A stretch of DNA of 13,303 nucleotides, the filler included, from Oculina patagonica (lineage: Eukaryota): assembly GCF_052425735.1 (NCBI RefSeq). It is 2 parts of 2 records of this genome, joined end to end, with 100 filler letters (N's around TTAATTAATTAA, not from the genome) between each part and the next. Parts side by side here need not be neighbours in the genome. Positions count along the whole stretch, not along the records: positions 1 to 4,794 come from NC_135762.1; 1 more part is not named here. The stretch is one strand, 5' to 3'. The notes beneath the pieces are model-generated. The model ran no database searches. It worked only from the letters and a program-made list of their open reading frames with translations, and was not told the origin of the DNA. Shown here in pieces: positions 1 to 1,144 of this stretch (the first letter of the stretch is position 1; every line of letters starts with the position of its first letter). Made by a program: the position numbers and the translations under genes.

Positions 1-22
1 CTTATTGGCAGAACTAAGACTG
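1..22 (-). CDS. TMEM175: Continuation of the TMEM175-like exon after the insertion (...VLVLPI, runs off window)
   Basis: The reverse complement of 1-22 reads (a)ca gtc tta gtt ctg cca ata ag = T V L V L P I. Removing the insert and one TSD copy restores IVATVLVLPI, as expected after TMEM175 TM1. Confidence 0.75.
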
Positions 23-1023
23 CAAAAACAGAAGTGACATACGTTCTCAGAACCAAGTACACGAATCCTAGTGATTGGAAATTCCAATGGCGTGGAGAAA
101 TGATCATAGTCACGGTCGAATCAAGCAGTGGAGTGCTCGTCCCAAACGAACAGCACAGTCGAAAAAAAATGCCGAAGACGAACGGCCGACAAGAGAGACC
201 ACCAAGCCCCACGAAAGCGCCACACTCAACGAACAAGAGCCCAGATCCCATCAACCACCAGGAAAGAGAAAGAGAAATGCAGAGCCCGAGCACAAAAAAA
301 GAAGCGAAACAGAGGAGACAGGACGGAGGACGCGAAAGCGACGAGACTGGCCAGGACCGACGACCGAGACCGTCCAGCGACCCCGCAGCCCAAGCGCCCA
401 GACAGCGGAGAGGACGGGACCCGCCGGAGGGGAGGGGACCGGGCGGAGGAGGGACCGCGACAGCGAGCCGGCCGACGCCAGGCGAACGGGAGCGGCGCGA
501 GGGGGCGGGGAGATGTATAATGGATTAAGTGTAATGACGAGAGAGGAGAGGTGTCAGTATTTTATAAGTGTTGGAACAGAAGTGATCAAGGAGGAATGAG
601 GTAGAAAAGAAAAGAATGAGGAGAAGAGAGAGAATGTAAGAGAAAGTTGAAGAAAATTTAGGGCTTAGCTCTGATCAGCGAAAGGAAGAAAAGAGAAAGA
701 GGAAAATTAGGGAAGAGAGAAAGAAATGAGGGGGGAAAGGCTGAAGAAAAGAGAAAGCACAGACGAAAGATCCCTCGAAAAAGTAATAGGGGGGTTGTTA
801 AGTGAAAAAAAGAATTTTTTAAGAGGGGGGTTAGGAGGTGATATATTTTGTGTGGTGGAAGTTAGTGAATTGAAGGGAAGCTTAGAAATGGGATGTTATT
901 TTTTTTAGTTTTATGGTGAGAGCATTAATAGGGTAGGGAAAAAGTATTTTTTTTTATTTGATAGAATTTTAAGTAATTGTAGTATTGTATTGTAATGAGT
1001 GTGATGAATCAGTAAGAGCAATA

Positions 1024-1049
<26 letters not shown>
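23..1049 (+). mobile_element. Polyadenylated retroposed insertion (5'-truncated non-LTR element or retrocopy) with 13-bp TSD
   Basis: TSD agaactaagactg at 10-22 and 1050-1062. AATAAA at 1020-1025 runs into an uninterrupted A tract (1023-1050). Composition differs sharply from the flanks. Confidence 0.9.
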
Positions 1050-1055
<6 letters not shown>

Positions 1056-1144
1056 AAGACTGTCGCTACTATGGCGAACACTGCATCGTTGAAACATTGC
1101 AAGCGCTTCAGATGAAAAAGGTCCAGCTGCAGTTCTTCTGTCAT
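1050..1144 (-). CDS. TMEM175: TMEM175-like endolysosomal K+/H+ channel, 5' part of first coding exon (interrupted by insertion)
   Basis: ATG in gccATGa context at 1144. Translation MTEELQLDLFHLKRLQCFNDAVFAIVATVLVL matches the TMEM175 TM1 signature RxxxF(S/N)DxxxxIxxTxxxL. The frame resumes on the far side of the insertion. Confidence 0.85.

Follow-up and report, generated by a model that had tools for sequence, protein, structure and literature searches.

Gene-disrupting retro-insertions of the LINE (L1) type, which comprise 5′-truncated LINEs, SINEs, and processed retrocopies, are a well-known kind of event, and a poly(A) tail combined with a target-site duplication is the signature of target-primed reverse transcription by the LINE endonuclease/reverse transcriptase. 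Some L1 insertions are twin-priming inversions, in which an inverted 5′ segment meets the rest of the insert at a sharp internal junction. Hypermutated retroelements, whether modified by APOBEC3 (G-to-A) or by ADAR (A-to-G), and the products of reverse transcriptases supplied with biased dNTPs in vitro have in common a strand-specific, clustered, transition-only pattern that leaves unconverted islands. On the protein side, TMEM175 endo-lysosomal K+/H+ channels (PF06736; human 6w8n and others) have a two-repeat architecture of about 12 helices, with an RxxxFSD-type signature at the start of TM1 and of TM7.

Here we describe a locus of the coral Oculina patagonica in which these themes meet. The window, that is, the whole stretch of 13,303 nt that was analyzed, opens on a TMEM175-like gene, named gene C below, and we are confident that positions 23-1049 are a single, recent poly(A)-tailed retro-insertion that disrupts it, creating what is most likely a null allele of a gene whose loss is probably tolerated. 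As an event, this is a new instance of a familiar kind, gene disruption in a redundant tandem paralogue. The composition of the insert is abnormal, and a standard retrocopy is not the whole story. Positions 1-4607 of the window are identical, with 0 mismatches, to genome locus L009 (GCA_052425735.1 CM126639.1), which was used for the gene flanks only and from which the left flank of the window was read. The features of the disrupted region are as follows.

1-22, minus strand: continuation of gene C past the insert, where base 20 and those below it encode ...VLVLPI... in frame, running past the left edge for about 465 more codons in the genome
10-22: left copy of the target-site duplication, AGAACTAAGACTG, 13 nt, exact repeat
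20-1054, minus strand: span handled by GenBank model P0023 as two introns and a micro-exon, yielding TVL-DSF-LVLPI
23-140, plus strand: zone 1, the 5′ end of the insert, of ordinary four-letter composition, about 60% purine
141-513, plus strand: zone 2 ('L'), with T nearly absent, GC-rich, aperiodic, and complex
169-375, plus strand: first exon of GenBank model P0022 (KAL9972315.1, hypothetical protein ACROYT_G018599), exon end approximate
514-1022, plus strand: zone 3 ('R'), with C nearly absent
911-1144, minus strand: read-through ORF of the filled allele, with 32 native residues, a poly-Phe/Leu run from the tail, and a stop at residue 77
1023-1050, plus strand: pure poly(A) tail of 28 nt (A28), whose final A may instead be part of the repeat
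1050-1062: right copy of the target-site duplication, AGAACTAAGACTG, 13 nt, exact repeat
1051-1144, minus strand: start of gene C (ATG at 1144-1142; codons 1-31 and the first base of codon 32), with the RLQCFND signature and most of TM1

As in L1-type retro-insertions, the poly(A) tract abuts an exact 13-nt duplication. The copies of AGAACTAAGACTG at 10-22 and 1050-1062 match at 13 of 13 nt and have no other counterpart in the window; with up to one mismatch allowed, the window holds two matches against 0.03 expected, and two matches arose in 0 of 200 shuffles. The first base of the right copy is the last base of the A28 run, and an AATAAA at 1020-1025 lies at the junction of zone 3 and the tail. 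Between the repeat copies, the insert measures 1027 nt and runs antisense to gene C, which it enters at codon 32, in TM1. The exonic site and the premature termination are likewise shared with gene-disrupting insertions of this type. The inferred nick on the gene strand, GTTCT/G, follows a pyrimidine run, as an L1-type nick may, and resembles the L1 consensus TTTT/A only loosely. An uninterrupted version of the site is seen within this genome, in paralogues B and A, as well as in the orthologues of six further loci (L001-L006), and the two gene flanks, which overlap by the repeat, are colinear with these uninterrupted genes.

The anatomy of repeat and tail points to LINE-type target-primed reverse transcription as the mechanism. 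A LINE-type endonuclease/reverse transcriptase would have nicked the sense strand of gene C after ...GTTCT, primed on the poly(A) of a non-coding, purine-rich RNA, and copied about 1 kb of it, the staggered cut leaving the 13-nt duplication.

The identity of the disrupted gene emerges when the insert and one repeat copy are removed in silico. The minus strand from 1144 to 1051 reads MTEELQLDLFHLKRLQCFNDAVFAIVATVLV, which then joins in frame to the ...VLPI... encoded from 22 to 1. The joined 34-mer matched Pfam TMEM175 (first 21 positions; E 4.5e-5, 24.3 bits against a cutoff of 25) and, in the PDB, TM1 and TM7 of human TMEM175 (E 1.2e-5). The excised gene C is an uninterrupted intronless ORF of 499 codons ending at L009 8437, and the part that begins with the left repeat copy (L009 8440-9852, 471 residues) contains two Pfam TMEM175 (PF06736) repeats at 125.5 bits (E 1.2e-36). 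Its product has about 12 hydrophobic segments and two RxxxFSD-type signatures, RLQCFND at residue 14 and RVEFFSD at residue 237, and is predicted to be a two-repeat TMEM175 channel. Ile25 aligns opposite human residue 46 (6w8n), and the insertion point lies seven residues past this TM1 isoleucine. The coral proteins differ from the TMEM175 family in having FND for FSD in repeat I, in gene C as in paralogues A and B, and gene C differs further in being intronless and in belonging to a three-copy tandem array; the coding regions of its relatives likewise lack an intron. From published structures, TM1 lines the pore, and we take human Ile46 to be its gate.

Because the rest of the 499-codon ORF is uninterrupted, the insertion is the sole lesion of gene C, and this, together with the perfect repeat and tail, indicates that it is young. 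Translation of the filled allele enters the tail, which is read as poly-Phe, and stops at residue 77; the allele is therefore most likely null. A word-indexed search with the 77-aa ORF returned three short proteins, 88% identical across the 32 native residues; their contigs, in which TM1 is uninterrupted, belong to coral metagenomes (two Tara-labelled ENA assemblies, another ENA sample, and one Logan run).

Much of this had been anticipated by a sequence-only reading of the window. The 13-bp duplication with its A tail (exact at 10-22 and 1050-1062, with A28 at 1023-1050), the position within the TM1 codons antisense to a TMEM175-like gene (codon 32, with the Pfam and PDB matches of the joined 34-mer), and the poly-Phe read-through to a stop after 77 aa (ORF 911-1144, minus strand) were all found as described. 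A recent insertion, as proposed, agrees with the intact remainder of the 499-codon ORF and the perfect repeat and tail, and a likely null allele agrees with the stop at residue 77. That reading had also staked its case on the sequence left of the window, and the outcome favours it: L009 does continue there as TMEM175, with two Pfam repeats at 125.5 bits. Two of its statements hold in part. A coding exon is indeed disrupted, but it is the only one and not merely the first, the coding region being intronless. The repeat and tail point to LINE target-primed reverse transcription, but the insert is not a recognisable LINE, SINE, or mRNA copy.

The disrupted gene has close relatives beside it in the genome, as listed here.

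L009 8437-10976: gene C, 499 codons after excision, bearing the insert
L009 16157-17587: gene B, 476 aa, sister of C
L009 20208-21686: gene A, 492 aa, a more distant paralogue

The array runs C-B-A over 13 kb and is followed by an Ank-DHHC gene. Gene C shares 89.1% identity with B and 51% with A. In a maximum-likelihood tree of C, B, and B-type proteins from six other taxa, C and B are sisters (support 91/99) with branch lengths of 0.11 and 0.025, respectively, and relative-rate tests with four outgroups gave 33-35 C-specific against 9-13 B-specific amino-acid changes (p ≤ 0.005). Judged from these comparisons, gene C is an Oculina-lineage duplicate of B and the youngest of the three. With a dN/dS between C and B of 0.20 at a dS of 0.255, gene C was under purifying selection for most of its history, yet evolved 3-4 times faster than B. 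This faster evolution fits a gene C that is partly redundant. A gene that arose last among three tandem copies, and whose evolution had outpaced that of its sister before the insertion, can probably be lost without harm. The sequence-only reading had offered a dispensable paralogue as one option, and the search for paralogues supports it, with three tandem copies of which the disrupted one is lineage-specific and fast-evolving. Near its C-terminus (L009 8437-8600, left of the window), gene C also carries a 27-residue tandem duplication relative to B and its orthologues, IFILMKLVFSCC...RK / IFILMRLVFFCC....

A related coral is represented by Tara-labelled ENA metagenome contigs, by a Logan run, and by one further ENA assembly. 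Two of its contigs have an intact orthologue of the B-type gene (L005 13518-14942 and L006 8675-10099), whereas in two others this gene carries a nonsense codon, TGG>TGA at codon 89 in L001 (5550-6974) and TTG>TAG at codon 57 in L002 (1589-3016). As these four alleles (L001, L002, L005, and L006) are only 3-14 of 1425 nt apart, the two nonsense codons look like independent segregating null alleles, which likewise speaks for a tolerable loss of gene C. In a third taxon, homology to gene B ends after about codon 92 in a 948-nt contig (L004 142-948); the contig has an opposing 210-aa ORF with no Pfam match, and an insertion, a rearrangement, or an assembly chimera are all possible causes.

Other elements lie farther along the window. 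Upstream of gene C, positions 1927-2239 form a MITE-like element of 313 nt, whose terminal inverted repeats, each about 80 nt long, occupy 1927-2006 and 2154-2239; a perfect 9-bp target-site duplication, ACCCTCGCC, stands on either side of it (1918-1926 and 2240-2248). A non-LTR reverse-transcriptase pseudogene lies at 2400-4602; it is decayed, being broken by many stops and frameshifts, and two of its ORF pieces match Pfam RVT_1. Its last 133 nt or so are duplicated internally (3131-3263 resembles 4015-4148 at 82-94%), and it terminates in a degenerate (AACC)n tract devoid of G (4148-4602), which extends into the N gap.

The composition of the insert sets it apart. Purines make up 60-70% of its whole length, zone 1 included, and are balanced throughout, with A/(A+G) of 0.28-0.67; only the identity of the pyrimidine is monotone. 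At 150-513 in zone 2, there are 8 T in 364 nt (A122 C107 G127), and zone 3 has 21 C in 509 nt (A198 G157 T133), 12 of them in two islands at 661-680 and 741-778. These islands show ordinary mixed C/T, and the first contains an 8-nt palindrome, CTGATCAG. The switch from zone 2 to zone 3 at 513/514 is abrupt. Seen from the first-strand cDNA, synthesis would have begun with 509 nt in which every purine is A and passed through 373 nt in which every purine is G before the composition became normal. The eight surviving T's of zone 2 never precede A, which corresponds to a 5′ G or C on the other strand, a context that is weakly ADAR-like (p about 0.04). In 73 kb of related coral loci, no 300-nt window had 5% or less of any base, and the sequence upstream of three other poly(A)/(T) runs in those loci (two sites) was of ordinary composition. 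To our knowledge, no retrocopy matches this pattern of one pyrimidine per zone.

Several simple origins were considered and rejected. A satellite or microsatellite does not fit, as neither zone 2 nor zone 3 reached |z| ≥ 3 at any lag from 1 to 80 (the (AACC)n tract, used as a control, reached up to 15), and k-mer diversity was at shuffle level in zone 2; zone 3 was slightly more repetitive than its own shuffles. Coding origin was set aside for lack of 3-periodicity (p 0.95 and 0.68), a test in which one coding control of 509 nt reached p 5e-8, and a control of 364 nt no better than p 0.08. A structured RNA is disfavored by fold z-scores of -0.05 and -0.8 and by the absence of Rfam or tRNA matches, and a bisulfite-like artefact by just 4 of the 21 surviving C's lying in CpG. 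A hairpin between zones 2 and 3, which would be an ADAR substrate, was discarded since the zones are unrelated in a collapsed-alphabet comparison.

Unlike known L1-type retro-insertions, the insert cannot be recognised as a LINE, a SINE, an mRNA copy, a tRNA, or an Rfam family, and no LINE, SINE, or cellular mRNA source was matched to it in the collections and loci searched. It had no match in Rfam or among tRNAs, and its ORFs had none in Pfam. Exact look-up of the 77-aa and 174-aa ORFs of the window retrieved no record, and a word-indexed search with the 174-aa ORF (frame 3 of the T-less zone) no match. A phmmer search of 1.84 billion representatives with the frame-1 insert ORF gave one match, P0022, which is the window's own GenBank model. 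Back-translated and degenerate (T as Y) DNA patterns of the insert were absent from JGI metagenomes and IMG/VR. Zones 2 and 3 were unrelated, on either strand, to each other, to the rest of the window, and to about 90 kb of coral loci, whether compared in the plain, pyrimidine-collapsed, or two-letter alphabet, the sole above-null match being a T-run. A literature search on the assembly accession and on comparable hypermutated retrocopies found nothing directly relevant.

How, then, did this composition arise? It is quite plausible, if short of probable, that it is native. The template would then have been short of T and C in the respective parts from the outset, being either a non-coding RNA rich in purines or a chimera produced by a template switch between two RNAs at 513/514. 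The purine richness of the whole insert, extending into the normal zone 1, is consistent with such a template, the 513/514 boundary is as sharp as a junction, and base-depleted tracts do occur in this genome, such as the G-free (AACC)n at 4148-4602. However, zones 2 and 3 lack the periodicity of a satellite, the k-mers of zone 2 are as diverse as those of shuffles (those of zone 3 being somewhat more repetitive), and no relative turned up in the protein collections or metagenome contigs searched. Moreover, we know of no complex natural RNA whose purines are balanced while one pyrimidine prevails for hundreds of bases.

It is also possible, though we hold this only tentatively, that the zones owe their single pyrimidine to the retro-insertion itself, in which a normal RNA would have been edited or copied with errors. 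The combination of balanced purines, monotone pyrimidines, a sharp switch, and unconverted islands would be expected of such a process, and the zones, being aperiodic, complex, non-coding, and unstructured, resemble neither satellite nor coding sequence. The ordinary composition of the 73 kb of related coral loci, and of the sequence above the three other poly(A)/(T) runs, points in the same direction. Two routes can be envisaged. In the first, reverse transcription would have proceeded without one purine dNTP, first dGTP and then dATP, placing A opposite C and then G opposite U. In the second, the 3′ part of the RNA would have undergone C-to-U deamination, and a 5′ part, whose orientation twin priming had reversed, A-to-I editing. 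Applied here, the L1 twin-priming inversion, whose internal junction is sharp like that at 513/514, would put the putative A-to-I and C-to-U deaminations on one RNA strand.

Neither route is free of difficulties. As no progenitor was found in the searches, no substitution was observed directly, and it is ad hoc to suppose that one cDNA passed from lacking one purine dNTP to lacking the other. Had APOBEC acted on the first-strand cDNA, this strand would be depleted of G, not of C; an APOBEC G-to-A excess on the poly(A) strand is absent, G standing at 31-35% and the depleted bases being C and T. ADAR is compatible with the T depletion in 141-513 only if this segment has the opposite orientation to the RNA. 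The conversion needed, at least 85-100%, lies well beyond the usual reach of ADAR/APOBEC hyperediting. In addition to the weakly ADAR-like context of the surviving T's, the reading of zones made during insertion has a precedent in HIV-1 reverse transcriptase, which causes U-to-C hypermutation at low dATP in vitro (PMC3511177); the C-to-U half of the biased-dNTP route would follow by analogy.

A still more specific proposal is that the insert is the fossil of one germline retrotransposition whose pyrimidines were rewritten strand-specifically, U-to-C over 373 nt and then C-to-U over 509 nt, through purine-dNTP starvation or host deaminases acting on twin-primed RNA. We consider this full scenario unlikely as it stands. 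The insert would share with hypermutated retroelements the strand-specific, clustered, transition-only pattern with unconverted islands but would differ from them in that its putative changes are U-to-C and C-to-U in the RNA sense, not G-to-A or A-to-G, are near complete, and form two opposite zones in one insert.

The insertion itself could be questioned as a fixed germline allele: it might be an artefact of assembly, or one haplotype might have captured an insertion that is somatic or heterozygous. This view could draw on the single assembly present in the searched collections, on the searches having returned neither a 499-aa empty-allele protein nor a second filled-allele copy, and on the abnormal composition of the insert. 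We nevertheless regard it as very improbable. A chimeric read or misjoin would not make an exact 13-nt duplication abutting A28 within a continuous ORF, and an artefact is thus unlikely given these exact junctions; heterozygosity would qualify a single, recent retro-insertion into gene C, not replace it.

The public annotation treats the locus differently. GenBank model P0023 presents gene C as an intact 503-aa 'TMEM175-like' protein spanning the insert. The only GT-AG structure that gives the deposited protein has an intron from 1054 to 68 (987 nt), a 7-nt micro-exon from 67 to 61, and a 41-nt intron from 60 to 20, and puts four extra residues into TM1; P0023 looks like an artefact of frame-preserving prediction. 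P0022 spans L009 10001-12546 and is a spurious two-exon model in which an ORF from the T-less zone is fused with one from the LINE pseudogene, its second part covering about 2541-2714, where the LINE ORF ends at 2714. The frame of its first exon is open only because zone 2, without T, is without stop codons. Both the intact annotation in GenBank and the aberrant composition of the insert are additions to what the sequence-only reading had noticed. That the insert is spliced out, leaving gene C to yield a working channel as P0023 implies by its name and span, is highly improbable, for although the repeat carries a GT and the 5′ junction of the insert makes ...tttttgcag| on the gene strand, this GT...AG pair cuts out 1035 nt instead of 1040 and shifts the frame, the deposited protein requires the 7-nt micro-exon and the 41-nt intron with four residues added within TM1, and no single GT/GC-AG intron keeps the frame while leaving all of TM1 in place and unaltered, which led us to reject intron gain through one canonical intron.

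The retro-insertion into gene C has consequences at several levels. A 503-aa 'TMEM175-like' protein and a fused 'hypothetical protein' in the public annotation hide a transposon insertion behind a 7-nt micro-exon. If the fossil scenario were true, this would be a hypermutated LINE-mediated insertion of a kind not described before. If a normal progenitor exists, the locus would be a direct record of near-complete transition hypermutation during cnidarian retrotransposition, and the two sequences would form a pair from which the responsible enzyme or nucleotide-pool condition could be worked out. As a gene finding, the locus is modest: it offers, from a coral, a probable loss-of-function allele of a lysosomal channel paralogue, one that is clean and can be dated. 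Taken with the two independent nonsense alleles in another coral, the insertion in gene C suggests that B-type TMEM175 copies are dispensable in scleractinians.
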